Below, piece by piece: positions 2,081 through 63,181 of a stretch of DNA of 64,000 nucleotides. The translations under genes were made by a program, and so were the position numbers. Every line of letters begins with the position of its first letter. Positions within the stretch are counted from its first letter, which is position 1. The stretch lies in contig CATNEN010000027.1 in the NCBI GenBank assembly GCA_950097015.1, forward strand, positions 186,001 through 250,000, read 5' to 3'. A model generated the notes under the pieces. That model was given only the letters and a program-made list of their open reading frames with translations, had not been told where the DNA came from and ran no database searches. This stretch comes from Macrostomum hystrix. Lineage: Eukaryota > Animalia > Platyhelminthes.

Positions 2081-2776
2081 TGAAGTGTTACAATTTAAAC
2101 TATGCGATTTTTACATCTAGGCGCGATTAGAATATGCAGCTCTCCTGCGCGAGGATGCATTTGCAGGAGCTCTAGGATTAGCCTAAAGACTCCTGCCCTA
2201 TGGCAGCCTTTGGCCGGATGAGTATAAAAGTTCTTGCACTGAGAGAAAGTAAGACCGCCCCCGCTCGCCCGTTCCTTCTTCGCTTGCTATTCAATCTCCT
2301 AGCTAGATCCGATATCTATTAGTCGCTAGCCTTTGCTATCCCTGGCTAACCCATGCAAGATCCAGATAATTAAGAATACCTTATTGAAATTGGAATTGTG
2401 ACTCCTGGAAACTTCACCCAGATCTTACCTTGAACCCTTTTCCATATCTTGGTTACTGACTCAGGATCCGTGAGTAACAATCAAATACTTGTGCTTGGGA
2501 ATTACCTTCTCTCAGTGATTGTAATAATTGTAATAATTTATAGTGAGTTGTCATCTTTTAACTGTTTGCCGTAAGACCAACAAAATATAATCCGATTGAG
2601 AGTATAAGACCGAAAGTGAGTGCAACATCAGGAAAAGATAGTCGATTTTCCACGCCTCCTCATTACTTAGAAATAGCCGTGTACAATTGGCTCTTGTCAA
2701 AGACAACTAGTAAAGATAATAAGAATACTCATTAAACTAGACATTGATAGACCAGAGACGAATCTAAAATATTTCA
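2081..2776 (+). repeat. 5' LTR (696 bp)
   Basis: TGAAG...TTTCA termini, TATAAAA at 2223-2229, AP-1-like TGACTCA at 2457-2463. No mismatch to the 3' LTR found by eye. Confidence 0.97.
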
Positions 2777-2777
2777 C

Positions 2778-2791
2778 TGGTTCCCTGACCG
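2778..2791 (+). promoter_or_regulatory. Primer-binding site complementary to the tRNA-Glu 3' end
   Basis: TGGTTCCCTGACCG lies one base after the LTR. It is the reverse complement of ...CGGTCAGGGAACCA, the 3' end of animal tRNA-Glu(CUC) as I recall it. Confidence 0.85.
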
Positions 2792-3691
2792 TCTTTTCCT
2801 CCATGCACTCACTTTATTTCTACACCATGACTAAATTCATTATGGGCTAATCGCTTAAGGCATGGCTGAGGGGCGTGGGGGGAGTAATCTGGCAATTCCT
2901 TTCTGCAATTAATATTAAATTTTGTCGAGTTCGAAACAATCTTGTGTTCTCCCGTGTTTCACTGCGTCCTCAATGAAATTCGAGGGCCCTCTTAAACCAC
3001 AGTCAGTCAGTCGACTAGAAAGTCGATTATCGATAAATCAGTTTAAATGGAGAAAATAAAGCTTGAGGTGTTGGCGCGCAGATATAAATTAAAATCCTCT
3101 CAAGACTTTTAATAAGTCATAGTCGGCAAAACCTCTTTCTTCAACACCTTTCCGAGTCGTCAAGTTAGGTTTAGATTTCGTTGAATGTATTCAACACTCT
3201 CTAAATAACTTCTCAACTCAAACCATTTCCCTCCAACTCTGCAAGTGTATAGCCTCCCTATTGTTGAAATTTGTTGGAAATTCCTCAAGTCAATTGTTAA
3301 ATCAGACGGCAAGTCTTCTAAACGAAGATTTCTCTACTCCCCCAACGTAGAGAATCCTGCAGGTTGTCTTCTAAAAAGACAATTCTGACTAATATTTTAT
3401 CTTAGACGCTTTCACATATAGAACTTTTAGCAACAAAAAACTTTCTCAAATTAACACGAAATCCTATAGCTACGCATTATCCTCGCTTTTCCGCTGGGAC
3501 AGCGTTTTTTTTTTTCTTTAATCAAACTTCGTTCTCCCGACGCGGCTTTCCGTCGTGTGGTCCATGCATACAAACACGCGCGCTTATTTCCCCAGTGCCT
3601 CCACTCATCAATCAACAAAAAACTTTTTTGGAAAACTTTTTCGCCCAAATTAATTACCAGGCTCGACGCTGCGTTAGGCAAAAAAGCCTTT

Positions 3692-4020
3692 TTCTCATTT
3701 ATTTTCGCAAAAATCCAATTACTTGCCCAGATCTCATTTCCTAGCTGTCAGCCTCACTTTCTCATTTATTTTCGCAAAAATCCAATTACTTGCCCAGATT
3801 TCTCTTCATGTGAGCACAAATCTTATTTCCTAGCTGTCAGCCTCACTTTCTCGTAGATCGATCTCCAAAATCCAATTAACTGCTTTAGCCTTCTTTGCAT
3901 GTGAACTCTACTCCTATCTCCTAGCTGTCAGCCACACTTTCTCGAAGAGCCATCACAAAATCCAATCAACCGCTTCAGCCTCCTTCGCATTTAATCAAAA
4001 ATTTCATTTTCTGGCGGTCA
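3692..4020 (+). repeat. Four diverged 70-95 bp tandem units inside the LTR element, upstream of an internal TATA
   Basis: Recurring AAAATCCAATT...TCCTAGCTGTCAGCCTCACTTTCTC blocks. Confidence 0.8.
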
Positions 4021-4038
4021 ACCGCAATTTCCCGTCAC

Positions 4039-4098
4039 TATAAAAAGCCTTCACCCTCTATTCACAGTCAATACTCTCAAACCTAATTCAACTCAGTC
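4039..4098 (+). promoter_or_regulatory. Putative internal core promoter (TATA plus Inr-like motif)
   Basis: TATAAAA at 4039-4045, ACAGTC at about 4064, TCAGTC at 4093. Precedes ORF 4328-4606. Confidence 0.5.
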
Positions 4099-4327
4099 AC
4101 TCTGCGCTCCTCTGCACTTCGACCTACTTGCTGCATCCTTCGCCGTGTCTGCTGAAGATCTACTGGTGCCATTCTGCTTGACGCCGGCCACTCCACTCTT
4201 CCTCGCTGCCGGAACCTCTAACTGCCAGACACACCTAGTTTGATCGCGGCCCCGTGACTGCCTTCTGATCACATTTCTCTTTTTATCTATATTTCTCGTC
4301 TCACTCTTCTTCCACTTTCTCTCCAAA

Positions 4328-4606
4328 ATGGACAAATCATGTGCTCTACTCAACTTCTACACATACTGGCGTTATCTCTCCCTCTGTCCTAGTTCTCTTG
4401 AACGATTTATTCTTCTCCTAGGTGAGCTCGGTTGGGGTCCCATTCTAGCCGGCATCACTGGTAATCCTCCTCGGAAAGCCATCCTTACTCTTCCCTCTAC
4501 TATCATTCATCTCATTACTCTTTTTTATACCGTTTCTACAGTACTAACTTTATCATTTCTCATTCTTCGTCTGCTTCTTCAACCACTTTTAACCAGACAC
4601 ATCTAA
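4328..4606 (+). CDS. Small hydrophobic accessory ORF of the LTR element (92 aa, putative membrane protein)
   Basis: Good ATG context (AAAATGG), hydrophobic C-terminal half, upstream TATA, AATAAA at 4938. No family recognised. Confidence 0.45.
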   Translation: MDKSCALLNFYTYWRYLSLCPSSLERFILLLGELGWGPILAGITGNPPRKAILTLPSTIIHLITLFYTVSTVLTLSFLILRLLLQPLLTRHI

Positions 4607-5474
4607 CGCTGTAAATATACTTGATATGCTTACAAAATTCTATAAAAAAGCACAAAAATATATACATTTTCATATCATATATAACATTACCTACTTAAGC
4701 TGTATATAATTATTTAACTATCTCTCTCTATGCTTACACACGCCAACGTTTCTATATATATTTCCTCGTTCACAAACGAACATTTATCTAATAGGATGTA
4801 TAATGAAGTTCCGCACTACACAAATTATATATATTGCTTTCCTTTGAACATATCCTCTTGTAAATACATCTTTTCATACGTAACGACATGTGTATACCTG
4901 TCTTAATACTTATACTTTCTATAAAAGTGGTAAAAAGAATAAAAACATATAAAACTCAAAAAAATAACAAAAATATATTACCATCTAACTTGTCTTCGTT
5001 TATAACGTGAATATATATATATAACCAAAAAACTAAAAATCACAAAATCAAAAAGCAAATAAAAATAGCAATATTAGAAAACAAAATAAAAGCAGTAATC
5101 TAGAAAGCGTCTAATGATATAAATATTCCTACAAAAATCCCTCCTCGCTATTACACTTTGCATTCTTTGCCTGACTCCAAAACCACGTGGTACCTATTTG
5201 TTAATTAATTATTCGCCGTGCTGATTCAATCTGAACGGAGAACACATTCCCCACTCAGACGCAGATGAACACGTTTAAATAAAAGCCGCATTACTTATTC
5301 TGAATCCCCAAAATTGCCAGAACTCCGGACCACGTGCCCGAAAGCCGTTGCCTGTTGCGACAAACCCTCTTCTTACTACTCGCAGTAACCAATACTTGCT
5401 TCACTATCAAGTTCTTACTCCGCCTTATTCGAATCTTGTTTTGCATTCAACTCCACAAGAGAGTTTAAAAGTAC

Positions 5475-8400
5475 ATGAATTTATTGCCTAGTTATACTCG
5501 CTCTGGAAGAAATTATCAATCATTGAAATTGGAGGACCCACAGCAATCTCAAATACCGAATCAGTCCATAGACCCTGATTCTATAGTTGAGGACAATCCA
5601 AACGGCACAAACCCCTCCGTCTTGTCCACACCTCAGAATAGAACTGTTACAGGCGCATCAACTTCCGTCACTTTTGGAGACTTACCGTCATACAGAGACA
5701 GTACATTACAAGGTCCACCACTCGCTTCCGTCGATAGTGACAACGACACGTCTGAGGACCAGAGAGACCTGGAAGATAACGACGATCAAAACGTCCAAGT
5801 CCCAAACATGGAAGAAGCCGCAGCAGCTTTACGACAATTTACTGACACAATGAACCGAGCTATGGGCACCGGCGCTGAACAACCGGTGTCAGCGACGGTT
5901 CTCGCTGAGGTCCGCAATTGTGTCAAAGGCATCAATCAGATGCATGACTTCCCGACTTTTGTAGCCGAATTCGACCTGGCTGCCCGAACTTTTGGATTAT
6001 CGAATACCACCAAAATTCGCATATTTCCACGACTACTGGACGACTTACTCAAGCTCGAATTTGGAAGGCTCGATGCCCAGACTCAAAATTCGTTCCCCGA
6101 TACTATTCGAGCTCTCACGGAACGCCTACGAGAGATTTCTATCGGCTCGACACTAACATTACATAATGCAACATCTCGTAAACAACAGCCAGGCGAACCA
6201 TTCCTACAGTACTTTACTGATTTACGCCGGAAAATGCGTGCTACCTTACCGGCTATAGCACCTATATATGCCGAGGGTACTGAACCCGAAACCCCTCCTA
6301 CGAACTTGGGAGCAATGCAACAACGCGACAGAGACTTTACCACCACCTTTGTCGCTACAGTCATCAACAATTCACTGCCTTACCTGCGGTCAGACCTGCT
6401 TAAGCGCAACATTTCCTCTGAGGCAGAACTGCTCAACAAGGCCTTGAGAATTGAACAGACTCGCGACTCCACTCTGGACTCGGACGAGTCTGACATTAAA
6501 AAATTGACTGAACGACTTAATGCTCTCTTGAATACCACCCAAGAGTCTAATGAACAGTTATTGGCTACATTGAATCGCACTGCCAGGAAGTCGCAGCACA
6601 CACGTCCGGAAGTCAAGACCTGCTACACTTGTGGTAAAATCGGTCACACATCCGCACGGTGTTGGGCAGGAAGTGGACCTACAACTCAGCAGGATGACAG
6701 ATATCGACACCAAAATCGCCAGCCGATGAACACTTATGAGACGGCAAACTTACCTGGAGCGGCCATCCGACAAAAATTTCAAGGTTACACACCCCAGGGA
6801 CAAGGCCATGGTAACCAGTATCGCAGTCCACAGTGGCAGCCAGACAGGGGTTGCAGCTATTGCAGACACCCTGGCCACATCATCGATGTCTGCCGAAAAC
6901 GCATGGCACAAAGCCAACCACGTTATTCACCGCCTTATACACAGCCCTGGCGACACAACAATCAACACATGCGACACAATATCCGAACGATCACAGTGCC
7001 ACACTATGAGGATCAACAAGAGTCTGAATGGCATCACCGCGACCACCCCGCGTCGCTTATGACACTTCAGTCTACGGATGACCCAACCCCGGATGACGGA
7101 CGAATCTATAGGTTCACTGGCGATTCTAGACAGTTAGAAAACTTACTGCACAATCAAGACCCTAAACCTGCTCAGATTAACACACTCCGATTGGTATCAC
7201 TTCCGACCGAACACACAACCAACGGCGTGGCCACTGTTAAGCTTGTTGTCAGCAATAGCACGACTCAGACCGAGCCGCGACAGACTCCGTTAGCTCCGCC
7301 ATCACCACCGCCAACTTCGCCTCCGTCTCCCCCTGTATCGACTGTCTCCGTCGGAGTTGGCGATTTCGACGTTCGCATAGTCGCTGAGCAACATACAGAG
7401 CGGCCAACTTCAACCAAGTCCTGCAGCCCAGATATCGCCGCAATCGTCATGTCCTCAGCTGAGTGCCGCGTGCTGAAACTAATCGACACCGGGTCGAATT
7501 TGTCCATACATACGCACGACACGTCTACGCAGGATTCCGGATTATTATTTGATAAGCAGCCGCAAGAACAGGCGACCAGGAAATCTTCATCGACCACCTT
7601 ATCGAGCAATTACTGTTGCCAGCAATCTATTCAGCAGCAGCACCAACAGCAGCAGCAGAACCAGAACCAGGAAACTGAACTACTCCACCAGCAACAGTTG
7701 GATCAAATCGAACGCGAGCATGTGACCATCGTAAATGAACTCCGATCAATTATTACTGAACTGGAGACTCAGTTGAGCACTTATCAGACTACGGTGATCG
7801 AACTACAGCAGTCCGCCACTTCGGCCAAGTCAATTCGTCGACGCAACGTTGGCTTAATTGTGAAGCCGTCCTGCCACGACGTCGATATCAACTTCGTCGC
7901 CGAGGAGGCCAAGCTGGCTCAGCGGTTCGTTGGAATCAGCGTGGAACTTCAACCAACGCCGCCAACACCGCCGCCTCTACCGCCACCGCCACCATCACAG
8001 TCCGATACTAAGATTGGCACATGTCCACTGCCTCCACCATCACCTCCTGTGGAGTTGCAAATGGAAGCGTTAGTTCCGCCACAAGGAAGACGACCAAAGC
8101 CACCACCTCCACCTATCCCACAGTGGCCAGCTTCCTACGCTTGCGCCATCAAACATGCCATCACCGCAACAATGATCCAGCTACGGTGCCAAGGCACACG
8201 ACAGACGCGCTACAAATGCACAGCACTCATTGACAGTGGCGCCTCGATCTCCTGCATTTCCTCTGAATTCGCAAGAAAACTCGGCACTCCAATACAGAAC
8301 ACCAATTTAAGCGCAGTTTGCGCAGGAGGACAACAGCTTTCACTCAATCAGAAAACTACTCTTAAATTGGAGATCGGACGACAAGAACATTCAATAACCG

Positions 8401-8591
8401 CCTTTGTATTGGACTCCACATTGCCAGACTATGACCTCCTCCTGGGAGTAGAAACCTTTAAAACACTTGGAATCCCACTACGGTTTGACTACTCCAAGGC
8501 GATCGCCACACTCGGCAATGAAGAATTTGCCCTGATTAATTCACTCACACCTCAGAGTGAAACATCAGAAATCATGACGAAAAGACAATGA
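5475..8591 (+). CDS. gag: Gag-protease polyprotein (1038 aa)
   Basis: Gag capsid-like region (QQPGEPFLQYF), CCHC knuckles CYTCGKIGHTSARC (6621-6662) and CSYCRHPGHIIDVC (6852-6893), aspartic protease ALIDSGASISCIS...LLLGVETF (catalytic Asp at 8232). Stop follows the protease. Confidence 0.92.
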   Translation: MNLLPSYTRSGRNYQSLKLEDPQQSQIPNQSIDPDSIVEDNPNGTNPSVLSTPQNRTVTGASTSVTFGDLPSYRDSTLQGPPLASVDSDNDTSEDQRDLEDNDDQNVQVPNMEEAAAALRQFTDTMNRAMGTGAEQPVSATVLAEVRNCVKGINQMHDFPTFVAEFDLAARTFGLSNTTKIRIFPRLLDDLLKLEFGRLDAQTQNSFPDTIRALTERLREISIGSTLTLHNATSRKQQPGEPFLQYFTDLRRKMRATLPAIAPIYAEGTEPETPPTNLGAMQQRDRDFTTTFVATVINNSLPYLRSDLLKRNISSEAELLNKALRIEQTRDSTLDSDESDIKKLTERLNALLNTTQESNEQLLATLNRTARKSQHTRPEVKTCYTCGKIGHTSARCWAGSGPTTQQDDRYRHQNRQPMNTYETANLPGAAIRQKFQGYTPQGQGHGNQYRSPQWQPDRGCSYCRHPGHIIDVCRKRMAQSQPRYSPPYTQPWRHNNQHMRHNIRTITVPHYEDQQESEWHHRDHPASLMTLQSTDDPTPDDGRIYRFTGDSRQLENLLHNQDPKPAQINTLRLVSLPTEHTTNGVATVKLVVSNSTTQTEPRQTPLAPPSPPPTSPPSPPVSTVSVGVGDFDVRIVAEQHTERPTSTKSCSPDIAAIVMSSAECRVLKLIDTGSNLSIHTHDTSTQDSGLLFDKQPQEQATRKSSSTTLSSNYCCQQSIQQQHQQQQQNQNQETELLHQQQLDQIEREHVTIVNELRSIITELETQLSTYQTTVIELQQSATSAKSIRRRNVGLIVKPSCHDVDINFVAEEAKLAQRFVGISVELQPTPPTPPPLPPPPPSQSDTKIGTCPLPPPSPPVELQMEALVPPQGRRPKPPPPPIPQWPASYACAIKHAITATMIQLRCQGTRQTRYKCTALIDSGASISCISSEFARKLGTPIQNTNLSAVCAGGQQLSLNQKTTLKLEIGRQEHSITAFVLDSTLPDYDLLLGVETFKTLGIPLRFDYSKAIATLGNEEFALINSLTPQSETSEIMTKRQ

Positions 8592-9400
8592 TGAAGTCTG
8601 CGCAAAAACTCGATCAGTGATCAGCATTCTTTAATACGTAAACATTGCTTTATACGTTACCCACATTTCTATTTCGTTATAATTTAATTCCCTTCTTCAC
8701 CCTTGATGCTTTATATAGAATATCATCACTTTTCCACACCTCTAATATCCGTCTTCTCTAGTACACATTATATGCCTGGATATCACTTTTGTCAATCCAA
8801 AAACACAAAAAACTACAAAAAATACCACTTTTCAATACACATTATTTAGTTTCTCGCTTATCCTATTTCTTTTCATAATTATAGATAATTTTATATATTA
8901 CCTAAACTCGACATGCGGCTTCACCTATATTTATTCGCTACCTTTATTACCTCCTCATACATATGTTACTCAGCTACGACTATTTCGAAGACAGACCTCT
9001 TCTCCTTACACTTGTTCTAAACATTCTTTCCAATATCTTTTCTTTCTGTCCCTTATTCCACATTCGCCTCATTGAGGCTCGACCGTGTGACTAATCTGAT
9101 GACCTGGCGATTGGCTAACCTGATGACCCGAAGTCTCACCGAATACCGCTGAAGCCGACACCGTGGCCTACACTAACACGCTGTCATTCATCCAGCTATC
9201 GACTTCATCCCATACTGTCTTAGCGTTTACACCGACAGCGGCACAAGCGTCTCTCCCATCAATCAAGTCTCTCTGCCCGACTCCTGCAATTGCGATCTCT
9301 CGTGTCCGACACGAAGCAGAAACAGAAGCCTCATTTCAACGTGGTGGCCCTGAGAAGGGCCGTTTTAACGTTCACAATGGGCTAACATCATACTGTGCAG

Positions 9401-9679
9401 TCAACAGAGCGACCCCGCAGCGAAATCGGCACCGTCTAGAGCAACTGCCGGACTAACCGACCGCTGCTCTGGATGATGGGTATTTCGCCGTGGATATCGA
9501 CATCTGCAGCCACAGCAGATGCACACCCACACAACCAGACTGACTAAGATGAAGGCGCCTAACAGCGCCCACAGGCTAATCAGCTGCCACTCGACGATCT
9601 GCAGTCGCTTGTCGAGACGCTCGACCTGAACACCGAGATCTGTTAAAAGCCAGCGCAGATTTGAAATTTGGTCTTGCAT
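9401..9679 (-). CDS. Antisense small transmembrane protein of the LTR element (92 aa; heptad-TM-Cys cluster-basic)
   Basis: Heptad-like N-terminus, TM LISLWALLGAFILVSLVVWVCIC, then CCGCRCRYPRR. GC-rich island in AT-rich DNA. Minus-strand TATAAA at 9768-9763 and AATAAA at 8948-8943. Confidence 0.6.
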   Translation of the reverse strand: MQDQISNLRWLLTDLGVQVERLDKRLQIVEWQLISLWALLGAFILVSLVVWVCICCGCRCRYPRRNTHHPEQRSVSPAVALDGADFAAGSLC

Positions 9680-10288
9680 TGCCAGTTGAGAAACAGTTTA
9701 ACTTTTAGAAACTCGCTAGAAGTCAAATGTTGCACGCATAGAGCCCCACGTTTTTCTGTCCCTTTATATCACTTTTCGTCGCTTTAATCCAAACCTCTCC
9801 TTTCCTTTACTTTCTAACTCAATAAACTTAACTGGACATGTACATTACTCGCGCACATAGTCTATGGCACTTCTCTGCGCTTCGCTTTATCTCTACCCCA
9901 CTCCCTTTGTGCACCCTCCTTGACCCTGTCTAAGGTCTTGTATATGCCACTTGTTTTGACACTCCTAATCGATCGTGTTTTTCTATCATATTCTTATACC
10001 AACTATGCATATAACCTTTACACGCCATCTCACATTTTTATACCTCCTACAAGTGTTATCAAAAGCTAGACTTCGAAATCAATTGTCAATTGTTAGGACA
10101 TTTTCAATTCTTATTTCTCAAACTCGCACTATTTATACTGTACAGTTTTTTTCGCGCTTTATCATTTTCTTTAAATCTGTTTCCGAATGCCTCTTATACC
10201 GTCATCTTTTACCCCCACAAATGTTAATCAACCTCCTATAATATCTAACATATTGTTATCTATGAGCTCGGAGGACCTTCGCTTCTGT

Positions 10289-10297
10289 AAAAAAGGG
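10289..10297 (+). promoter_or_regulatory. Short polypurine tract
   Basis: AAAAAAGGG four bases before the 3' LTR, preceded by CTCGGAGGACC, which resembles a Gypsy 3' motif. Confidence 0.65.
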
Positions 10298-10301
10298 CTA
10301 A

Positions 10302-10997
10302 TGAAGTGTTACAATTTAAACTATGCGATTTTTACATCTAGGCGCGATTAGAATATGCAGCTCTCCTGCGCGAGGATGCATTTGCAGGAGCTCTAGGATT
10401 AGCCTAAAGACTCCTGCCCTATGGCAGCCTTTGGCCGGATGAGTATAAAAGTTCTTGCACTGAGAGAAAGTAAGACCGCCCCCGCTCGCCCGTTCCTTCT
10501 TCGCTTGCTATTCAATCTCCTAGCTAGATCCGATATCTATTAGTCGCTAGCCTTTGCTATCCCTGGCTAACCCATGCAAGATCCAGATAATTAAGAATAC
10601 CTTATTGAAATTGGAATTGTGACTCCTGGAAACTTCACCCAGATCTTACCTTGAACCCTTTTCCATATCTTGGTTACTGACTCAGGATCCGTGAGTAACA
10701 ATCAAATACTTGTGCTTGGGAATTACCTTCTCTCAGTGATTGTAATAATTGTAATAATTTATAGTGAGTTGTCATCTTTTAACTGTTTGCCGTAAGACCA
10801 ACAAAATATAATCCGATTGAGAGTATAAGACCGAAAGTGAGTGCAACATCAGGAAAAGATAGTCGATTTTCCACGCCTCCTCATTACTTAGAAATAGCCG
10901 TGTACAATTGGCTCTTGTCAAAGACAACTAGTAAAGATAATAAGAATACTCATTAAACTAGACATTGATAGACCAGAGACGAATCTAAAATATTTCA
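10302..10997 (+). repeat. 3' LTR (696 bp)
   Basis: Direct repeat of 2081-2776 at an offset of 8221. Confidence 0.97.
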
Positions 10998-13734
10998 GAA
11001 GCAGCACCAGCGCCAGCTCAGGCCTCAATCGCAATCCTCTAGTGTCTCCGTCAGTGTCCAGGCCGGTGTCAGAAGGCGTGACCCTGCTAGAGGAGCTCGT
11101 CAGCTTCTTGTCTGGCCGGCCGTACGCAACTAGCGACGAATTTCGCTCCCACCTGCGCGCCAACGCTAGGCGTCAATTTACCGACCTGTTTTGCCGCTCA
11201 GCCGACGGCTGGCGCGCCTGGGTGCCGCCTAGCGTCGTCGGCGACGAGATCGAAACCGCTTCCCGGCGATCACTGTTCGAATTTTTTCGATCGGCCCGCG
11301 GCGATTTCATAGATCACGATCTGATTGACCTGCTTGAGCGCTGGCACCGGATGCTGCGATTGGCTAGCGACACAGGCCCGCCTGCCTCCCCGCGTTGGCT
11401 AGCCGGCACCCCAGACCGATTTGTCAACCAATTAAATGCGCACTTCTCTGCTCACACTGATTTTCTATGTCGACAGAATATTTGTCTAGAGGATGTCGTG
11501 TTTCTCTATCGGTAAGTTATATTTTCTGATCATTTGTTGGGACCTCTGTTCTGGTCTCGCCGTATTCACTAACCGCTCACACCTGGTAGCTTGTGGCCCG
11601 TGTATTCTTGTAGTATCGATTGTGTCTAGCTTAACACAAAGTTAGCGAGTTGGAGAAGGGAGATAAGAATCCTTACCTTACTTTTATACAGCATGGTCTA
11701 AAGCTGACATTCGTTTTCGCGTTTGCAGCAAAGTGCATCGGATGGAAAGTATGCAAGTGCATTAGTAAGAAAAGTTCACAACGCGTTTGAGTCGAAATGA
11801 TCTAATTATAGTGTTTAGTGCCCAAGGGAGACAATTCGGTGTCCTTGATCGAGACACAAGCTGTCAAATGGGTCAACCAGCGTCAACCGAATTTTTTATA
11901 CGTTTTCGCTCGTGTGTCGCACTCCCCATAGTCCATGGACTGAGTAGCTGTTCACAGTCAGAGTCTTTGTCAGCAACTGTCTGTTCTTTGTTTTGCCAGC
12001 CGCTTCGGCATTGTGCCCATCGAAGCCGACCCAGACTGTCTCAGGCGCATGGTCCGCGCAATCGAATGGGCTTCCAGGCAGTTCGGCTTCCTGTTTGCCC
12101 GGTTCCGCGAGCCGCCTTTCACTCTGGAAGACCGCTGCTCATTCTGCCGACTGAGTCCGCCTCAGGTGGTCGCCGAATTCGACACAGTCAGCGCGTTGGC
12201 CGTCGCCCGCGTCGAGAATCATAAGCTGCGACTGTGCTCTCCGTGCTCGGAGTTTGTGCGCAAAATTTCCGGCCCGCCGCCGATCTGTCCCTGCTGCGAG
12301 AGAAATATTCTGCGAGCCAAGGAGAGGCGCCTTTGAGTCCTCTGCTCTGGCTCACGCGATACTCCGTAGCAGTATCATCAAGGACCACTAAGAATGCAAG
12401 ACGCCAAAATATTTTGTCCTTGCGTCCTCTATTTTCTGTAGTGCCTTGGTGTATGTACTTTTCTTATAGCTGGTTTTAAAAATTAGCTTTTTTTCATTAA
12501 ATGACATTTGTGTTTTTTTCAGTGTGAATGTGAATGTAATCGTTTGTTTACTCGTAATGTATAGATTGAGTGTTCTTGTTCTTTTGTGTTGATAATGCTT
12601 CCAATTCGACAGTTATTATTATTTGTTTTCATATTTAACGCCACACTGTACACTGTACACATTTGAGTTATTAAACGCAGAACTGCAGTTTTAGGTGCAG
12701 AACAATTTCCATGCACCTAAACTATGTGAGATTACAATCTGCTTGCCTTGTGGTTATCGTTATGGCTCGCTCAAACATTCGCTTTTTCTTAGTAAACCAG
12801 CAAATTATGTAATTGCTATTGTATAAGCTATCATTTTTTAAAACATGCTTTGCATGCCAATTGTGTATTATATACCATCAGCTAAAGTCCCGTATTTTAT
12901 GGTCTAATAGAACGCGGCGAATTAGGATTATTATTGCTGCACTTTTAAGTTTAAGAAAAGTTTAACTTTTATTTTTGAGATAAAAAAGAACAAGATTTCT
13001 TGTTTTATAGATTCAAGATTCAAGATTCTAGTTTTCAAGATTTCTTTAGTAGAGTCACAACAATAATATAGCTGTGTTGGTTCTTAAAATGTGTACGTTT
13101 AAAGTCGATACTAAAAATCCTTTGGTACGAACACTTGTCTCTAGCCTCACTTATTTTAGTTACAGTTTCTATGCGGTTCTGTATGACAATAGTTTAATAA
13201 AATTATTACTATTAAAATAAAATGTAATAATATGAAATTATCCAAATTAATTTATATACGTATCTAATTCGGGTTGACACTTATGAAAGATAGGGACAGT
13301 AGTAGAAAGCTTTAAAATGTTTTTTCTATAGAAGTCTAACCCCTAGTGACTTCAGGAAAAACAAAAATGAAAACAAAGAAAACAAACCCTTGTAGGTTGG
13401 CAGGTTTGCATGCTTGCAGACTTGCAGGTTTGTGCATTTCGCTTTAGCACAAAAACGGCATGCCCTGCATAATTTGACACGGCATTGTTCATAATTTTGC
13501 GCCCTTGAAATTAAAGCAACAAAAAATTCCAAAAGTATACTTTATTATGATCTCCAGAAGTTATATTGAATCCTCTGGCTCAATTTTTAAAAAATGACAA
13601 AATATTTACATTTATAAACTTTTAAGAATTATTACTCTTTTGCTAATTTGAATTTTTTCTCAGAAACAGTAGGGCAAAATTCATAGCTATTTATTGGCAA
13701 GAAGACAACTGGCAACGTGATAAATTTCTAGGCT

Positions 13735-16700
13735 ATGGCTGGTGTGACGTCCCAAAATTTTCTAAAGGATGTCGATGTTGTTACTGTAAATGGGGGATTT
13801 ACTGTTGTATTGTTCACTATTGTTTTATTTACTTTACTAAACCGCTTAGTTAATTTCATCGGGACGCCATCTGTTGTTGTAAGCAATGCAAAGAACAAAG
13901 AGGAATCGTGGAAATGGAGAAATCTAACTCTGTCGTGGATTCATGCACTTATAATTGGCACGTGGGACCTTTCATGGTAAGTTTTTGTTTCAGTATACGA
14001 TTTTTATTGTCATAAATATGTAGTGCTAAATAAGTCATAAATGTCATAAGAACACCTAATTGTCATACATGCTGTTTTCGTATTCATGCACTAAGTTATC
14101 ATATTTATGCACAGAATTAGATAGTAATAATTCTAGACAACAAGATTTTACAGACATTAAAATAGCAATTGTATTTGTCTAGTAGATTAATTTAGGAAAG
14201 TTCATTCAACATAAACTTTATAAATTTATTAAGTTGTAACAGTCTATAGGGCCTAGGCCTACTAAGATAGACATTTGGAAAAAGTAATATATTAATTTTT
14301 CTAAATTTATGACAATAGTTTAAAGGCTTTAGTTAAAAAACTCTCTTAGTGGCTGTTCTCAAAAAACGTAATAATTTAAAAGATTTGAAACTTTTTTGTG
14401 AATCATTTACACAAAAATAATATTATATTAATATTGACATTGATTAATGAAACTTTCTAAATTGCAGTTTCTATTTCTATCCAGAAGTGTGGCAAGATCT
14501 GATTGCACACATATCACCATATACCTATTATATGGTTGCTGTTTCTACAGGTTAGTTTATTTATTTTTCTTTAGTTGTAATTTTCCCATTGTGTTATATC
14601 CATATTCAATGCATACTTTTTAATTATTTTATTCAAGGATACTTCATTTATGACTTTCTGGACCTTCTGCTTCAGAGAAGATTGTTTAAAGAATGGGAAC
14701 TTAGTCTGCACCATGTTGCTGTAAGTTTATGACTTTTTCTAAGAATCATTTCCTATACTGATGAAATAAATGCATGTCAGCTTTGTTTGCACTGATAACA
14801 AATATAAGTTGAGGTCATCACTAAACTTAAAAGCCTCAATATTAGTTCCATTGACACACATGCACAACACCTGGATGATAATAGAGATGAAACAGGTTTG
14901 TCTCGCCAAGAAGACCAAACAATGGCCAGTGGTTACTGACAAGCTAGAAACTTGGGCTGAATAGTCATTTATGTAAGCACTCGAGTGCAAAGACCACAGC
15001 TAGAACTTCCTTTTCGAGCTGCAAAAAGTAAAAGTACTTCAGCTCTGCATCATGCTCAGATCTCAAGGCAAACAGGATTGGCTAGTCCACTCGGGCTTCA
15101 TGATGGCAGAGCACAGCCCTGATGCCACAGTGTAGCCTGTCGCATTCCAACACAAGCGGTTTGCTTTTTTTGAAGTGCACTAGGACTAGTACCTGGCCAA
15201 GCAGTAGCTCGCACTTCCTGAATGCCTCGTCTTGATATTATTCTCAGTCACCAGCTCTCAAGAGAGGTTGGGAAGAAATGTTTCGTAAAAATTTGCTTTC
15301 TTTAGCGTCCTTGTCGATCTGGTGCCCGATGTACATCACACTTAGTTGTAGGAAGGCGCACTTAGCCGAGCAACGAAGTGCTATGTTGAAAACAACTGCT
15401 TATCTGCCAGCAGCTCCTTTAGCTTAGCGGGGTGGCTTGAGCAGGTGCTCCGCTGTATCTGTTTAAGTTCTGCCACTCTGCCAGTTTAGCGCCAGCTCGG
15501 ACAGCCAGTCTCGTCCCAACAGGGCCCTTTTACGACTAGTAGAGGCAGCAGCTTTATCGTCCCTTCCAGTTGCTCGCGCACCTGGATGAGGCGCAACACC
15601 GGGACTGACTAACCAGAATCCGTACACAACTGAGTGTTGGCCAAGTCCAGGCGAGGCCGTCTGCTCAGCACCGCGGGAAAAGTTGCGTCAGAGATAATTG
15701 ACACTGAACGCACCAGTATCCACCTCCATGTGCATGGGCTTGCCGTTGAGATCGATGGTGGTCTCGATCGGCGGCACCTTGTTTGAGCGAAATGTGATGA
15801 CATTGAGTGAGACGGCTTCGTCTTCCTGCTCGTTTCCCAGCTTTTCTAGCTCCTGGACGGTTTGGCCTTCCCGCAGAAATGCTTCGCTGACAGATGTAGG
15901 TAACAGCGCTTCGTTTTCTTTGCTGCTGATCCCGATAGCATGGACTGCGTCTTGACTTAAATAACAGATAACACTAAACAGCAGGTTGTGCGTCCTGCCA
16001 CAGACACTTTAAACTTCTCTGGTATGATATCAATATCGTTGGAAGATCAGTACTGCTACGCTCGTATAAGCGCTCCTGGTATTGCGGCCAAGAATCCGCG
16101 CCCTCCTCAAAAGGTCCGATTGAGCCAATCATACTCAGAGCCTTGTCGTCACTGATAAGACGTCATTTTGGTTTGCAGTGATGCAGACTAGGTAGGTCTC
16201 CTAACTTTAAAGCCTCAATCACATATATTTCATTCACACATACGCACGATACAAATTTAAATAAGCATTTGTACATCTTAGGAAAGGAAATGCCGATGCA
16301 TTGGACGTTACACCATTTACCAATTGATATCTCACAATGCCTTGGCAATACATTGTTTTTTATTACACCTGCCCCAATCAGGCCTGATGTGCACCCAACA
16401 GCACGGCCGCTAGTTACCCATTAAACATTAAGCTGGGTGAACTTTTAGGTGTGTTGCTAAAGAAATTAGAATCGAACCCACGACCCTTAAGTCGTGAGTC
16501 CATCCACGATTTAACCACAACCCTGTACAATGCTCCCCAATTTTCAGGTGATATCAATTTTCGTCTACAATTTGTGGAACCGCACCTGTATCGGCTACAC
16601 AGCTGTGGCCCTATTAACTGAAGTGAATTCGATATTTTTACACCTGCGCAAACTGATGCAGATGCTCCGCCTGCCGTTCTGCAGCCTGTCATACAGACTT

Positions 16701-45000: not shown

Positions 45001-48000
45001 GCCCGTCTCTAATAATCTCACAGTCTGTCTCTGATAATCTCACAGTCTGTCTCTGATAATCTCACAGTCTGTCTCTGATAATCTCACAGTCTGTCTCTGA
45101 TAATCTCACAGTCTGTCTCTGATAATCTCACAGTCTGTCTCTAATAATCTCACAGCCCGTCTCTAATAATCTCACCCGTCTGTCTCTGATAATCTCACAG
45201 TCTGTCTCTGATAATCTCACAGTCTGTCTCTGATAATCTCACAGTCTGTCTCTGATAATCTCACAGTCTGCCTCTGATAATCTCACAGTCTGTCTCTGAT
45301 AATCTCACAGTCTGTCTCTGATAATCTCACAGTCTGTCTCTGATAATCTCACAGTCTGTCTCTACTAATCTCACAGTCTGTTTCTGATAATCTCACAGTC
45401 TGTCTCTGATAATCTCACAGTCTGTCTCTGATAATCTCACAGTCTGTCTCTGACAATCTCACAGTCTGTCTCTAATAATCTCAGTCTGTCTTTAATAATC
45501 TCACAGTCTGTCTCTGACAATCTCAAAGTCTGTCTCAAATAATCTCACAGTCTGTCTCTAATAATCTCAGTCTGTCCTTAATAATCTCAATTTTGATCAT
45601 ATAGTCTCAAATAGCCTCTATAGTCTCAAATGTCTCACTAGACTCAAATAGTCTCACTGTCGATCATTAATAATCACACTGTCAAATTCCCATCGTCAAT
45701 TTCCTACATTCTAGGAAAGTTTCAATAGATTTAATTTTGAAAAGCTATGCTAATTTGGCCTCAAATAAAATTGGTAAATATGTTTTGTTGCGAAAAAAAA
45801 TTCCACAATGTTCTTGAAAAGACTTGGCATTAGACTGCCTGGTGGACTGCTGTGCTAGAAAAACTCGCTTGGCAGTAGATTCATTTTCGCATAGTTACAG
45901 GCGAAGGCATTTCTATATGACAATTGCGCAAGCATCGTTTGTGATTTCCTTGAACGCAGAAACAATTTCATATGCCCACGCTTTTGTTGAAACAAAATCA
46001 ACTGCGCAACTTTTGAAGCTCTTGAAAGTACTTTTGTTAGTCCGGGAATCGGGCTGCACACACACAGGGCCGTCTAGGAGACAACTCGATAGTCTCACTG
46101 TCTACTTTCACTTTTCTCATTGAAATGTCTGTCTCTAATAATCTCACAGTCTGTCTCTGATAATCTCACAGTCTGTATCTAATAATCTCACAGTCTGTCT
46201 CTGATAATCTCACAGTCTGTCTCTAATAATCTCACAGCCCGTCTCTAATAATCTCACAGTCTGTCTCTGATAATCTCTCATTGATGTTCTGCGCCCGCTC
46301 AGCTGTCCTACCCTGTTAGGGAACTGCTGACAACTTCACTGACACCCACTGCCTCTCACTGACACCACTGCCTCTCACTGACACACCCACTGCCTCTCAC
46401 TGACACACCCATTGCCTCTCACTGACACCACTGCCTCTCACTGACACACCCACAGCCCCTCACTGACACCCACAGCCTCTCACTGACACCCACTGCCTCT
46501 CACTGACACCCACAGCCTCTCACTGACACCCACAGCCTCTCACTGACACCCACAGCCTCTCACTGACACCCACTGCCTCTCACTGACACCCACAGCCTCT
46601 CACTGACACCCACTGCCTCTCACTGACACCCACAGCCTCTCACTGACACCCACAGCCTCTCACTGACACCCACAGCCTCTCACTGACACCCACTGCCTCT
46701 CACTGACACCCACAGCCTCTCACTGACACCCACTGCCTCTCACTGACACCCACAGCCTCTCACTGACACCCACAGCCTCTCACTGACACCAACTGCCTCT
46801 CACTGACACCAACTGCCTCTCACTGACACCCACAGCCTCTCACTGACACCCACTGCCTCTCACTGACACCCACTGCCTCTCACTGACACCCACTGCCTCT
46901 CACTGACACCCACTGCCTCTCACTGACACCCACTGCCTCTCACTGACACCCACTGCCTCTCACTGACACCACTGCCTCTCACTGACACCCACTGCCTCTC
47001 ACTGACACCCACTGCCTCTCACTGACACCCACTGCCCCCAGAATTCCTCTAGCATCGCATCGACAACCAGTTTAAACAGTTCGGAGAAACGCTGGCTGAA
47101 ATGGCAAACTATAAATAAATAGCGATAAGAGAGACAAAGCCGGAGGCACGAGAGGTTTCCCGGAAAAGAGCTCGCCCGGACTGAAACGGGCCGCGCTGTA
47201 GCCTGGATTCCGGACCCCAAGTCATCCCTACCTTACTCGTTTCGTAGGCCCCTTCCCGAAGCACCCCTAGCGAACCCGGAGACGCAGAATTTTTCCCATT
47301 GTCCCAGTTGCTGACCGCCCGGGCACTTCTGCTTGGCTTTCCTATCATCAGAGGACTGTAGGTGGGGTTGGCGTCACCACTGAGCAACTCGCTTATGCAG
47401 CTGATTCAGCCGGGGCTGGACCTCGATGGGGGCCAAATGTTTTTTCTTGAACTTCTGCTACAATGCAAGCTAAGCCAGTTAGCACTAAACATTAGCGATG
47501 CTGCATTATTACCTGAAACTTCATTTGCTAGCGGGCTATTCTTTGGACTGACAAAATCACATGCTACTTACTGATAGAATATTTTGATACCCAGTGTGAG
47601 ACTTCTTTGGGATAAAACGAAAAAAGAGTATGGTAAAATAAATTATCAATAGCCGAAAATAGAAATCCTCAAACAGGCAACCCAAAACTGGCAACCCAAA
47701 ACTGGCAACCCAAAACTGGCAACCCAAAACTGGCAACCCAAAGCAGGCAACCCAAAACAGGCACCCCAAAACAGGCAACCCAAAACAGGCACCCCAAAAC
47801 AGGCACCCCAAAACAGGCACCCCAAAACAGGCACCCCAAAACAGGCACCCCAAAACAGGCACCCCAAAACAGGCAACCCAAAACAGGCAACCCAAAACAG
47901 GCAACCCAAAACAGGCACCCCAAAACAGGCACCCCAAAACAGGCACCCCAAAACAGGCACCCCAAAACAGGCACCCCAAAACAGGCACCCCAAAACAGGC

Positions 48001-48877: not shown

Positions 48878-48989
48878 GGCCTACCGTTGAACACGAAACT
48901 TGCTAGAAAAAGCACCTTGCTTTATTTTTACCGTTCGTTCGCTTTACATGCAGTCTAAGCTGATATGGCAACCGTTAGCGTTTGGAGGC

Positions 48990-49470
48990 AGTGCGTGTCA
49001 GTGAGAGGCTGTAGGTGTTAGTGAGAGGCAGTGGGTGTCAGTGAGAGGCTGTGGGTGTCAGTGAGAGGCTGTGGGTGTCAGTGAGAGGCTGTGGGTGTCA
49101 GTGAGAGGCTGTGGGTGTCAGTGAGAGGCAACGGGTGTGTCAGTGAGAGGCAGTGGGTGTCAGTGAGAGGCAGTGGGTGTCAGTGAGAGGCAGTGGGTGT
49201 CATTGAGAGGCAATGGGTGTGTCAGTGAGAGGCTGTGGGTGTCAGCGAGAGGCTGTGGGTGTCAGTGAGAGCTGTGGGTGTCAGTGAGAGGCTGTGGGTG
49301 TCAGTGAGAGGCTGTGGGTGTCAGTGAGAGGCTGTGGGTGTCAGTGAGAGGCTGTGGGTGTCAGTGAGAGGCTGTGGGTGTCAGTGAGAGGCTGTGGGTG
49401 TCAGTGAGAGGCTGTGGGTGTCAGTGAGAGGCTGTGGGTGTCAGTGAGAGGCTGTGGGTGTCAGTGAGAG
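48990..49470. repeat. 20-bp minisatellite (GTCAGTGAGAGGCWGTGGGT)n, inverted copy of 46335-47037
   Basis: About 24 units, starting about 110 nt after the nuclear receptor stop codon. Confidence 0.95.
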
Positions 49471-52518: not shown

Positions 52519-57559
<5,041 letters not shown>

Positions 57560-59584
57560 TAAATACAATTAGTTCATTTTTACAATCCAGACAATAAAAC
57601 AGCACATAAAATTCATCTCATAGTTTATAATACGCTAATTTTTATGAATAGAATCAGCTAGTAAACGACAAGTTAATTTACTCCTTAAGAATTACTTCTA
57701 AAAAATTATCTTTGTGTTAGACATTCATAAATACAATCTAAAAGACTTTCAAAGAACATTTAAAAAACATTATTGCTTCTTTGAACAGAAAAATACTTAC
57801 ACGGTAGTATAGATATTGTATGTGGTAGGCATGTAATATATCTTTCAATAATATACATTAAATTTATTTATAATCGATTCCTGTCTCTTTTTTAAATTTC
57901 GATTTAAATTATAAACAGAAAAAATTATTTTGTTTCTTAAAAAATCATTTGAAGTCAACAAAAAATATAAAAGCTTGCGATACAGGAAATATACAAAAAT
58001 ACAAAAAATAAAGAACTACAATAATATTATTTCATAAGACTAAACTAACGACGCTAAAATTGGATATATATATACTTTTTATGTTTATCAGGATAATATA
58101 CAACACGTATGACTTGTTCACTTCTTTATTTTTATAGTATACAACAATTTATCTATTTCCTGCTGTAAAAAAAGATTAAAAAACGTTTTTTATTCCAAAT
58201 TCCCCTTTTTAAGAAAAACTTATTTTAATGTCTAGTCTAGGTAATGAATTAACGAATGCGTTAACGCTGATTTTAAATTTCTCTATTTCGTATTATCACC
58301 TATTACTCATTTTTCGTTTTTAACGACACACTGCAAACAAAATAATAAAAGGCTTTTAAATATTTTTATAAGATGCGTGAACGCATGCATTGAAATGAGA
58401 TAGCTGCACGATTTTTCATCATTCGGGGCATGCTTTCATTTTCAAATGCCAATCCTTTTATTTTTGTTCATCTCGTTTCGAACAGATAATATACAGAATG
58501 GTGCTCAAATAATTATTCCCTTCATTGATTTGAACAAATGCAAATGAAAGTAATTTATAGAAATACATCGTAAGGAGCAGGATTTTTCATTATTTTGTTA
58601 GCTAAACGAAATTTACAAATAAAGTTTTGTAACTTCTTTTATGAAACTGCTTTACACGTTGTTGAAGTAGGCACAACGTTTCGACTTCGTGATCTTTAGT
58701 GGAGGCAAATATTTAATTTCCGTGTTTAATTAATAACGATAAGTTTATTTCAAAATACAATGTTTGATAAAAACAAATGCGAAAGCGAAGCACGTGGCCA
58801 GCACACATGCCCATTTAATTATCTACTTTGTCTAATCTACAAAGGGCCAATATATTTCACTTTATTGGGCTTTGTCACGCAAGCAGGTATCTCAATTTCA
58901 TGCCGCATCGGTTTGGAAGTTTATTTGGAACTATGAATCAGCTAGTAACGCTTGCCAAAGCTGCGACAGTGCATACCGACCATTTTATTATTTATACGAT
59001 GGTTCTATCGATTGTTATAAATTTATGCGGGTCTCGGAGTTTCCTACTACGGCAGCTATAATCCCGGAAAATGATCAGTTGAACATCTTTATGTGCATAC
59101 GCCGTTATCAATTATGCACAGAGCACTGATGCCCAGTCTATAGCTCTATTTGAGCAGACAGAACTGAGTGTTCATTGTTTATGGGTGCCAAACCAAGCTA
59201 GTCCTTCTTGACTCGCAGTGTTGGCCTGCACTTTTAAGCAATAACCATCTTGGCATCTGACATTGCAGTGGACCATCTAAAGGTAGTTAAAGTATTTAAC
59301 AGGTTGATCAGGTAGACATCACGAAGTCATTCGGTATTCGTCAAAAGTTTCAACAAAGTTTCGACAGTACACGGCTGTCTGTAATTTAACTACCCAATAT
59401 CCAGAGTTTTCACTTTTCTGCAGTTTCGGAAAACGCTGAACAGAATTTTTGCTATTTCGTTTGATTCAATTTTGCTTTACAGCTCTGCATTATGCATGAG
59501 CTTTTCTACTAGGCGTCTGAGAATTGAGAACTTCACTCATCCGGGACCGCTTGCGTGGCTGAGATAAGAGGGGCCTGCATTTGA

Positions 59585-60361: not shown

Positions 60362-63181
60362 ATGGCCCTCGTCAATCGTCGCGGTTTCGAAGACTTCGAT
60401 GAGAGCTGCTTGAAGTTCAGCAAAAGCCATCCAGGCAAAGGTGGCGTCTGCCCCGGCCCCAACGCCTACTATTATCCCGCCCTGTCTGGCCCGTCCTACG
60501 GCCAGATCCAGCTGGCCACAACCAGTCTGGATGGCAACGGTCGGGCCGCGGTGTCTCTGGCCGCCTCCGGCGACAACCGCAAGCGGCCGCTGCTGGCGAG
60601 CGTCAAGCCAGACATCGAAACTGGCGGCAACGGATCGTCCGCCGTCGGTGCTGAAACGGCCGATCCCGGACCGTCGGCAGCCAGACGGCGTAGGGAGAAA
60701 TTCCTGTGCTGCTGCTGCGGTGTGCTCACGGCTGGGCTGCTGGCGGTCAGCGGCTTCCTGCTGCTCAGCTACCTGCCCGCGTTCCGGCCGCCGTCGTCAA
60801 ACTCGCCAGCGCCTTCAATGTCAGGCGGTGCGTCATGCGAAGGTCTCGGAGCAGCTTTCGGTGGTGGCGCGTCAACAGCATCAGCTGCGGGCCAGTCGCC
60901 GATTAGTCCAGACGGTGGAGTCTGCCTCGGTCACGCGTGTCTGAAGGCGGCCGCCGAGATGGAGGAGGCTCTCAATCGATCGATTGATCCGTGCGGAGCC
61001 GGCGGCGGCGACTTCTTCTCGTTCGCCTGCGGCGGCTGGCTAGCCGAGAACCACATGCCGCCCACCGTGTCCGTCTGGTCCAGGCAGGAGAAGCTGCTGA
61101 CGGCCACGCGAGGCCACCTGCAGGAGGTGCTGGAGGAGTCCGACCAGGCGTCTTCGTCTGGCCAGACTAGCTGGGAGGCCAAGCTAAGGACCTTCTACAA
61201 GGCGTGCGCCAACCTGGAGGACCCTCGGGTTGCTCAGTGCCACGCGGCGTCCGCGACGGCGCAGGCGACTGGCGAAGGCGCTGATGGCGGCGTCGGCGGA
61301 GGCGTCGCCGAGGACGAATTCCAATCGCTGCTGAAGCACTGCCAGAGGAAAGGAATGCGGCGACTGTGTGAGTCGGCTGGGATCTGGGCACCGACTGGCG
61401 TGGGTGTCAGGGGTCAGAATATTGGTCTGAGGTGGGGGTCAGAGAAGTGGGTCATGTTTGGGTCAGGTGGGGGTCAGGCTGGGATCAGGTGGGGGTCAGG
61501 CTGGGATCAGGTGGGGGTCAGGCTGGGATCAGGTGGGGGTCAGGCTAGGATTAGGTGGGGGTCAGGCTGGGATCAGGTGGGGGTCAGGCTGGGATCAGGC
61601 TGGGATCAGGCTGGGATCATGGGGGGTCAGGCTGGGATCAGGTGGGGGTCAGGCTGGGATCAGGTGGGGGTCAGGCTGGGATCAGGTGGGGGTCAGGCTG
61701 GGATCAGGTGGGGGTCAGGCTGGGATCAGGTGGGGGTCAGGCTGGGATCATGGGGGGTCAGGCTGGGACAAGTTGGGGGTCAGGCTGGGATCAGGTGGGG
61801 GTCAGGCTGGGATCAGGTGGGGGTCAGGCTGGGATCAGGCTGGGATCATGGGGGGTCAGGCTGGGATCAGGTGGGGGTCAGGCTGGGACCAGGTGGGGGT
61901 CAGGCTGGGATCAGGTGGGGGTCAGGCTGGGATCAGGCTGGGATCATGGGGGGTCAGGCTGGGACCAGGTGGGGGTCAGGCTGGGATCAGGTGGGGGTCA
62001 GGCTGGGATCAGGTGGGGGTCAGGCTGGGATCAGGCTGGGATCATGGGGGGTCAGGCTAGGATTAGGTGGGGGTCAGGCTGGGATCAGGTGGGGGTCAGG
62101 CTGGGATCAGTTGGGGGTCAACGACTGAGGTGGAGGTCAGGGGGTCAGATTATTGGTCTGAGGTGGGGGTCAGTGAAGGGGGTCATGTTTGGGTCAGGTT
62201 GGGGTCAGGTTGGGGTCAGGCGGGGTCAGGCGGGGTCAGGTGGGGTCAGCTTCTGCGAAGGGGTCAGTCGCCAATCTTCCACACATGTTGATAAACTGTG
62301 GCCTGCAGGCCAATATTTCCGTTGCACATGAAATTTCCTCTCCGATATACATATATATATTTCTATTGATAAATTGGAGTGCTGGGCCAAAGTCACTGAA
62401 ATTAAGTGCATTGCTTCTTGTCTGACTATTCCTATTTATTTAACCCATTGCCGCATCAAATCTGGATATTGATTGGGGGAACTAGGATCAACAATGAAGG
62501 CTTTATACGTAGCCAGGCTTAATGCCCCAATCATGCCAATTTATTTGACAGCCTTTGCCCGACCGGATAAACAGATGCGCTCGGATTGTAGACCTTGACA
62601 TGATTAACTCACAACTTCAGTGTGAGATGTCCATATTCAGTGTGAGATGTCCATATTCAGTGTGAGATGTCCATATTCAGTGTGAGATGTCCACATTCAG
62701 TGTGAGATGTCCACATTCAGTGTGAGATGTCCATATTCAGTGTGAGATGTCCATATTCAGTGTGAGATGTCCACATTCAGTGTGAGATGTCCACATTCAG
62801 TGTGAGATATCCATATTCAGTGTGAGATGTCCACATTCAGTGTGAGATGTCCACATTCAGTGTGAGATGTCCATATTCAGTGTGAGATGTCCATATTCAG
62901 TGTGAGATGTCCATATTCAGTGTGAGATCAATGATTTGTAAAGTCGAAGTACATGACAGCGGTCAGACAGTTTAACTGAAGCGCATTCAATAGTCCAGTA
63001 TCCTGGATATTTAGTGTGCTGTGGATGCAATGGGGCTTCCTATTCTCCACACAGAAGCCCCCCCATCTGTTCTCTAACAGCGGACCGCATCATCTGCATC
63101 GCAGTGGACCAAGGAGTGGACGCCCTGTTCAGACTGCGCGTGGTGGCCTCACCTTGGCAATCTGGCAAGCAAGTACTGCTG
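60362..63181 (+). CDS. M13 metallopeptidase (neprilysin/endothelin-converting enzyme-like), first two coding exons; gene continues beyond the window
   Basis: Type II topology: cytoplasmic tail, TM after RRRREKFLCCCC, then VCLGHACLKAA...LNRSIDPC...DFFSFACGGW...KLRTFYKAC. Exon 1 is 60362..61367 (donor GTGAGT). Exon 2 is 63081..63181 (SDRIICIAVDQGVDALFRLRV...VLL) and in phase. The catalytic HExxH is not in the window. Confidence 0.88.
61430..62250. repeat. G-rich 22-bp minisatellite (GGCTGGGATCAGGTGGGGGTCA)n in M13 gene intron 1
   Basis: About 35 units; explains the spurious Gly/Trp-rich ORF extension. Confidence 0.95.
62617..62928. repeat. 20-bp minisatellite (TCAGTGTGAGATGTCCAYAT)n
   Basis: About 15 units. 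Confidence 0.95.

Follow-up and report, generated by a model that had tools for sequence, protein, structure and literature searches.

Introduction

Among retrotransposons flanked by long terminal repeats (LTRs), a class close to the element described here is TR-GAG of plants, in which LTRs, a primer-binding site (PBS) and a polypurine tract (PPT) accompany a single Gag open reading frame (ORF) within less than 4 kb, and which is presumed to be mobilised by autonomous partners (PMC4350172). In the flatworm Macrostomum lignano, hundreds of Ty3/Mdg4 families are known, some of them strongly transcribed, while the published surveys of its LTR elements took reverse transcriptase (RT) as their starting point and are therefore blind to elements that lack pol (PMC12801592). 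Additional ORFs that run antisense between pol and the 3' LTR, and that are conserved from copy to copy as well as transcribed, have been described for the plant elements Grande, RIRE2 and Retand (PMC7264820), and maize Bs1 and other LTR retrotransposons carry transduced fragments of host genes, according to the work of Elrouby and Bureau 2010 as cited in PMC7264820. In this study, we analysed a stretch of 64,000 nucleotides from Macrostomum hystrix (GCA_950097015.1, contig CATNEN010000027.1, positions 186,001 to 250,000; referred to as the window, with positions counted from its first letter), which contains an LTR retrotransposon of 8917 bp with an intact ORF for Gag and protease (Gag-PR) and without any trace of pol.

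Like TR-GAG, the element has LTRs around one particle-protein ORF, with motifs that resemble a PBS and a PPT and with neither RT nor integrase (IN). However, TR-GAG elements are shorter than 4 kb, encode Gag only and occur in plants, whereas the element is 8.9 kb long, keeps its protease, holds 4.4 kb of non-coding interior and resides in an animal, with flatworm proteins as its nearest relatives. LARD and TRIM elements are defined by the lack of coding capacity, which does not apply to an element with an intact 1038-residue ORF, and for an endogenous retrovirus or another env-bearing element a match to an envelope or fusion glycoprotein gene is missing. The direct repeats with TG..CA ends and the short target-site duplication are those of an LTR retrotransposon. 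With the Ty3/Mdg4 elements of M. lignano it shares the order of Gag, spacer and PR, the capsid-like and CCHC domains, the TG..CA ends and sequence identities of 37-51% in the Gag core and 44-63% in PR. In contrast to these elements, which encode RT, RNase H (RH) and IN in the same ORF, it encodes none of the three, and its spacer holds a host-like module which theirs lack. The antisense ORF in its 3' internal region recalls those of Grande, RIRE2 and Retand, yet these are conserved and transcribed, while the one described here is known from one copy and is of a length expected by chance. Finally, as far as Bs1-type transducing elements are portrayed in the source cited above, they are defective, with an ORF that joins element- and host-derived coding DNA in sense orientation, as may also hold for the M. 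hystrix element; in the latter the host-like module is old and sits between nucleocapsid (NC) and PR instead of replacing pol.

Results

Structure and age of the element

The element is a structurally complete and very young LTR retrotransposon. Its parts are as follows, with amino acids abbreviated as aa.

2077-2080 and 10998-11001 (no strand): target-site duplication GAAG, 4 bp, on the left and right flank
2081-2776 (+): 5' LTR, 696 bp, TG..CA; TATAAA at 2223 and ATTAAA at 2731
2777-5474 (+): 5' internal region of 2.7 kb, non-coding, partly rich in pyrimidines and partly AT-rich; none of the frames matches a protein family
2778-2795 (+): PBS-like motif starting with the letters TGG, 1 nt from the end of the 5' LTR
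3691-3990 (+): tandem repeats, about 4 units of 67-91 bp, followed by TATAAAA at 4039
4328-4606 (+): sense ORF of 92 aa, on a strand rich in T and C; most likely due to chance
5475-8591 (+): Gag-PR ORF, 1038 aa, intact (0 stops, 0 frameshifts)
5904-6488 (+): capsid-like region of Gag, from profile and fold matches; bounds approximate
6621-6893 (+): NC with two CX2CX4HX4C zinc knuckles (6621-6662 and 6852-6893)
7344-7955 (+): host-like module (residues 624-827), lying between NC and PR in the same frame
8172-8480 (+): retropepsin-type aspartyl protease (residues 900-1002) with the active-site motif D-S-G-A at residue 920
8592-10301 (+): 3' internal region of 1.7 kb, AT-rich at first and then forming a GC-richer island; no protein family
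9401-9679 (-): antisense ORF of 92 aa that contains a single strongly hydrophobic stretch
10289-10297 (+): PPT-like run of nine purines, 4 nt from the 3' LTR
10302-10997 (+): 3' LTR, 696 bp, TG..CA, 0 mismatches to the 5' LTR

The two LTRs do not differ at any of 696 sites, which limits their divergence to about 0.43% (95% upper bound), and a match of GAAG on both flanks would arise by chance in about 1 of 256 cases. Since the LTRs are identical and the duplication is intact, the present structure stems from a single recent integration. A reading of the letters made earlier (the sequence-only reading) had reported mismatch-free LTRs of this length together with the GAAG duplication, and both were recovered exactly at the positions it gave; the PBS and PPT it named are also present, as motifs that resemble such sites. 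Taken together, the LTR element and its Gag-PR ORF lie far beyond chance.

The interior between the LTRs amounts to about 7.5 kb, 4.4 kb of which lie outside of Gag-PR. Throughout this interior C uniformly exceeds G on the plus strand, which is not the case in the flanks. The repeat array of 67-91-bp units upstream of the TATAAAA at 4039 could be a regulatory array. A three-unit heat-shock element, as known from some M. lignano families, was not found in the LTR with a degenerate pattern, and no Rfam family was detected within the window.

The Gag-PR frame

The sole long ORF of the element is Gag-PR. The sequence-only reading had described it as a Gag-PR ORF uninterrupted over 1038 residues, and our analysis assigns capsid-like, two-knuckle NC and protease domains to it. 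Pfam recognised the protease (best E value 1.8e-8), while the zinc knuckle stayed below threshold. A profile of the Gag core, built with seven distant relatives, matched the capsid of Drosophila Arc2 (dArc2; 6taq_B, E 1.6e-5), the Gag of Ty3 (6r22, E 3e-3) and many NC knuckles (E 3e-7). When solved structures were searched with the protein sequence by itself instead of the profile, noise was all that came back. In agreement with the profile, the top Foldseek matches of an AlphaFold model of mean pLDDT 74.7 were all retroviral capsid proteins, at weak E values of about 0.05. Queried with the complete ORF, a word-indexed search of proteins returned no match, probably because it was swamped by words rich in Q and P. 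At residue 671 lies a second motif, D-T-G-S; the internal duplication of the protease that it suggested was rejected, as the two regions are dissimilar and the motif sits within the host-like module.

Absence of pol and env

The element is without any trace of pol. The interior on either side of Gag-PR (2777-5474 and 8592-10301) was scanned in six frames, with each stop-free stretch of at least 30 aa searched against Pfam as a separate sequence, and none of the 86 stretches matched an RT, RNase H or integrase family (RVT_1, RNase_H, rve). No degenerate remnant was recovered either: tblastn with the polyproteins of the closest full-length relatives against the element found Gag and PR only, and in a relaxed search of both interiors, with E values up to 50, the best of 563 alignments reached E 0.28, which is noise. 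RT, RNase H and integrase are thus missing as a whole, which corresponds to one loss, with no remnant left from which further breaks could be counted. The same Pfam scan yielded no envelope or fusion family in the interior, and no similarity was found to the glycoprotein B (gB)-like parts of two relatives, P0005 and P0010, so that remnants of env or of a gB-like gene in the flanking interior were discarded as candidates.

Relatives and superfamily placement

An exhaustive HMMER search returned 26 proteins at E <=0.001, with the close ones all from M. lignano. Of these, P0002 (2852 aa) displays the order Gag, PR, RVT_1, RT_RNaseH, Integrase_H2C2 and rve, and P0003 the order PR-RT-RH. P0001 and P0003 are 99.7% identical over 370 aa and represent one family, which shares 51% identity with the element in Gag and 63% in PR; P0001 itself is a chimeric gene model in which a retroelement polyprotein is joined to laminin domains. 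Since the nearest relatives, at 40-63% identity, are ordered Gag-PR-RT-RH-IN, the element is almost certainly a pol-less derivative of the Ty3/Mdg4 superfamily, an assignment that, with RT absent, is made by kinship of Gag and PR. A retroviral-type capsid and a CCHC nucleocapsid, as found here, are those of a Gag of the Ty3/Mdg4 type.

Two observations on the wider set of relatives should be noted. P0007, which is related in Gag, carries the label of a bacterial metagenome-assembled genome (Kangiellaceae), where it is probably a eukaryotic contaminant. In P0005 and in P0010, a protein from a nematode, gB-like fusion-glycoprotein domains occur together with proteases.

A host-like module between NC and PR

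The present analysis adds a feature which went unnoticed in the sequence-only reading, namely a module common to the spacer of Gag-PR and an ankyrin-repeat gene. Residues 624-827 of the ORF align with residues 585-776 of the M. lignano protein P0004 at 56% aa identity (E 5e-55), and the cluster mates of P0004 carry C-terminal ankyrin repeats. P0004 is encoded by a five-exon gene on NIVC01000309.1 (locus L001), where the module (7762-8319 of the locus) lies inside an exon 1 of 872 codons. No similarity to Gag, PR, RT or IN was detected across the 24.8 kb of this locus. P0004 shares no sequence with P0001 and P0002, from which the module is absent, whereas a third M. lignano protein, P0009, shows its second half at 37-42% identity.

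When the module of the element is compared with that of the ankyrin-repeat gene, the non-synonymous distance (dN) is 0.25 and the synonymous distance (dS) is saturated, with dN/dS of about 0.1. By these values the split is old, and the module has remained under constraint at the protein level. Because the autonomous relatives lack the module, parsimony favours its origin as an old, in-frame capture of host sequence by the lineage of the element.

The two 92-residue frames

The sequence-only reading had proposed that the interior houses two small membrane-protein units, one in sense and one in antisense orientation, each with TATA and AATAAA signals and separated by AT-rich spacers. The ORFs, the TATAAAA and AATAAA motifs and the AT-rich stretches do exist, but the length of the ORFs is within chance: dinucleotide shuffling yields an ATG-initiated ORF of at least 92 aa in 28% of cases for the region of the sense ORF and in 21% for that of the antisense ORF. 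TATAAAA occurs 7 times and AATAAA 13 times in the 7.5-kb interior. No homologue of either ORF was found among 5.8 billion proteins in a length-matched search, neither reaches a Pfam family at threshold, and the two show no similarity to each other.

A hydrophobic stretch is contained in both. In the sense ORF it can be attributed to the pyrimidine-rich strand (67% T+C), and 42% of random ORFs with the same composition are equally hydrophobic. The antisense ORF reaches a 19-residue hydropathy of 2.78, which only 0.4% of random ORFs of its composition attain. Elsewhere in the window, a hydropathy of at least 2.5 is found in 12 of 273 stop-free stretches, so that one such stretch among the 17 of the interior is expected. 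We therefore treat both as chance ORFs, the antisense one, in which a coiled-coil-like stretch is followed by the strongly hydrophobic and then a Cys-rich stretch, being the more protein-like of the two. As a gene it is unsupported, and we keep it as a possible one since some plant elements hold conserved antisense ORFs at this position (PMC7264820).

With these results, the description as membrane proteins is unsupported, and the larger proposal built on it, in which a satellite system akin to a retrovirus would provide both its particle and two small membrane proteins from separate sense and antisense units, becomes highly improbable. In its favour are the composite make-up of the antisense ORF with its rarely attained hydropathy and the location of this ORF before the 3' LTR. 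Against it stand the chance length of both ORFs, their lack of kinship to each other, to any protein searched and to any Pfam family, the ease with which composition reproduces the sense hydrophobicity and the window the antisense one, and the lack of env-like similarity even to those relatives that possess gB-like fusion domains. Since neither homologues nor domains accompany ORFs of such length, "membrane-protein units" and "satellite retrovirus" are unsupported terms for this locus.

Genomic surroundings

Immediately downstream of the element, 11000-11512 (+) is non-repetitive, GC-rich and free of stops for 171 codons from the insertion site, without a Pfam family. As this frame would extend 15 codons into the left flank, the element may have inserted in or beside a coding exon. 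Host coding pieces were identified as an exon of UTP-glucose-1-phosphate uridylyltransferase at 56801-57568 (-) (E 1e-61) and part of an M13 peptidase at about 61010-61354 (+) (E 6e-12).

Minisatellite arrays (27763-63978 and 609-1312), in which units with periods of 4-39 bp are repeated up to 140 times, account for about 27% of the window. This share is in line with what has been published for the M. lignano genome, where LTR elements make up 21%, and simple together with tandem repeats 15% (PMC5730564). Two arrays of 20-bp units (46336-47036 and 48985-49470) form an inverted pair about 2 kb apart, their units being reverse complementary except for one base. Pfam matches to INTS6, PSMD3 and RPN5, as well as long ORFs in multiple frames, turned out to be translated minisatellites and were rejected as genes. 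The sole RT-like trace, at 14902-15177 (-), reached E 0.001 in tblastn to P0029, an RT fragment from M. lignano, without support from Pfam on stop-free stretches nearby, and was dismissed as a partner element.

Discussion

The element belongs to a known kind, as a copy that is either defective or dependent on a helper. As to its origin, we favour, with a probability of roughly 45%, mobilisation in trans of a non-autonomous lineage. According to this model, the RNA of the element would already have been without pol at the time of copying, and packaging, reverse transcription and integration would have been carried out by enzymes that a near autonomous relative provided within the same cell. In the relatives, Pol is the tail of a single Gag-PR-RT-RH-IN polyprotein, so that the Pol of a helper would enter particles only via Gag-Gag contacts, and the helper should therefore be a close sibling with compatible Gag, LTR ends and PBS. 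The 92-aa ORFs would have no part in this mechanism. Such helpers are plausible, given the hundreds of Ty3/Mdg4 families in M. lignano (PMC12801592). We favour mobilisation in trans because of two properties of the interior. Its 4.4 kb outside of Gag-PR match no protein of any relative, so that the element does not plainly look like a full-length one from which a piece was removed, and its uniform excess of C over G, absent from the flanks, fits a long residence of all parts in one transcript.

Several observations weigh against this model. Only a single copy was seen, with no second copy, solo LTR, partner or other likeness to the LTR or the interior in the 64-kb window, and exact look-ups of three ORFs of the window returned no match. 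The PBS-like motif is without a tRNA match, as neither the window nor the M. lignano ankyrin-repeat locus contains a tRNA gene. The intact ORF says little in so young an insertion, and the same structure would result from a deletion, either during reverse transcription of a full-length parent or after integration.

The first of these two routes would involve template switching that skipped the part from RT to IN while the RNA of a parent packaged in its own particles was copied, giving rise to a one-off defective copy that founds no lineage. Young proviruses and LTR elements commonly show large internal deletions, and the similarity to the full-length relatives, which extends across the protease as far as the ORF goes and has nothing beyond, is in line with such an event, although it sets outer bounds only. 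It is the lack of a second copy, both in the window and by exact ORF look-ups, that keeps this route in play. However, the parent would need to have been about 12 kb long, including 4.4 kb of interior without coding function, and no remnant of pol is left on either side; we hold a one-off deletion during copying to be somewhat less likely than mobilisation in trans. The second route, in which an autonomous insertion lost RT, RNase H and IN by a later genomic deletion, is equally compatible with a single copy and would likewise leave an early stop after the protease. With 0 substitutions in 1392 bp of LTR, a clean deletion of several kilobases would have had to occur within a very short time, which in our view is less likely than the alternatives, and we consider this course of events improbable.

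The sequence-only reading had concluded that RT and IN necessarily came in trans. What stands of this is a very recent element without pol and the existence of autonomous relatives that encode RT, RNase H and IN; the identity of the LTRs, on which the conclusion had been built, is by itself no proof of it.

Mobilisation in trans of a non-autonomous lineage leaves room for a more far-reaching version, namely a long-lived, propagating animal lineage that encodes Gag-PR only and acts as a particle-making parasite of autonomous Ty3/Mdg4 elements, with a cellular coiled-coil module, captured long ago, maintained under purifying selection and the antisense ORF maybe in use. We regard this version as rather doubtful, though clearly less so than the satellite retrovirus-like system.

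The basic classification of the element is unchanged by any of these points. A young, structurally perfect copy with Gag-PR only shows that such elements exist in flatworms and are being made now. The module between NC and PR is a candidate case of an animal LTR retrotransposon having taken up host sequence, an event that is rarely documented. If copies of the element prove to be numerous, it would represent an animal counterpart of the plant TR-GAG class and would bear on the sharing of particle proteins among single-ORF Ty3/Mdg4 elements.

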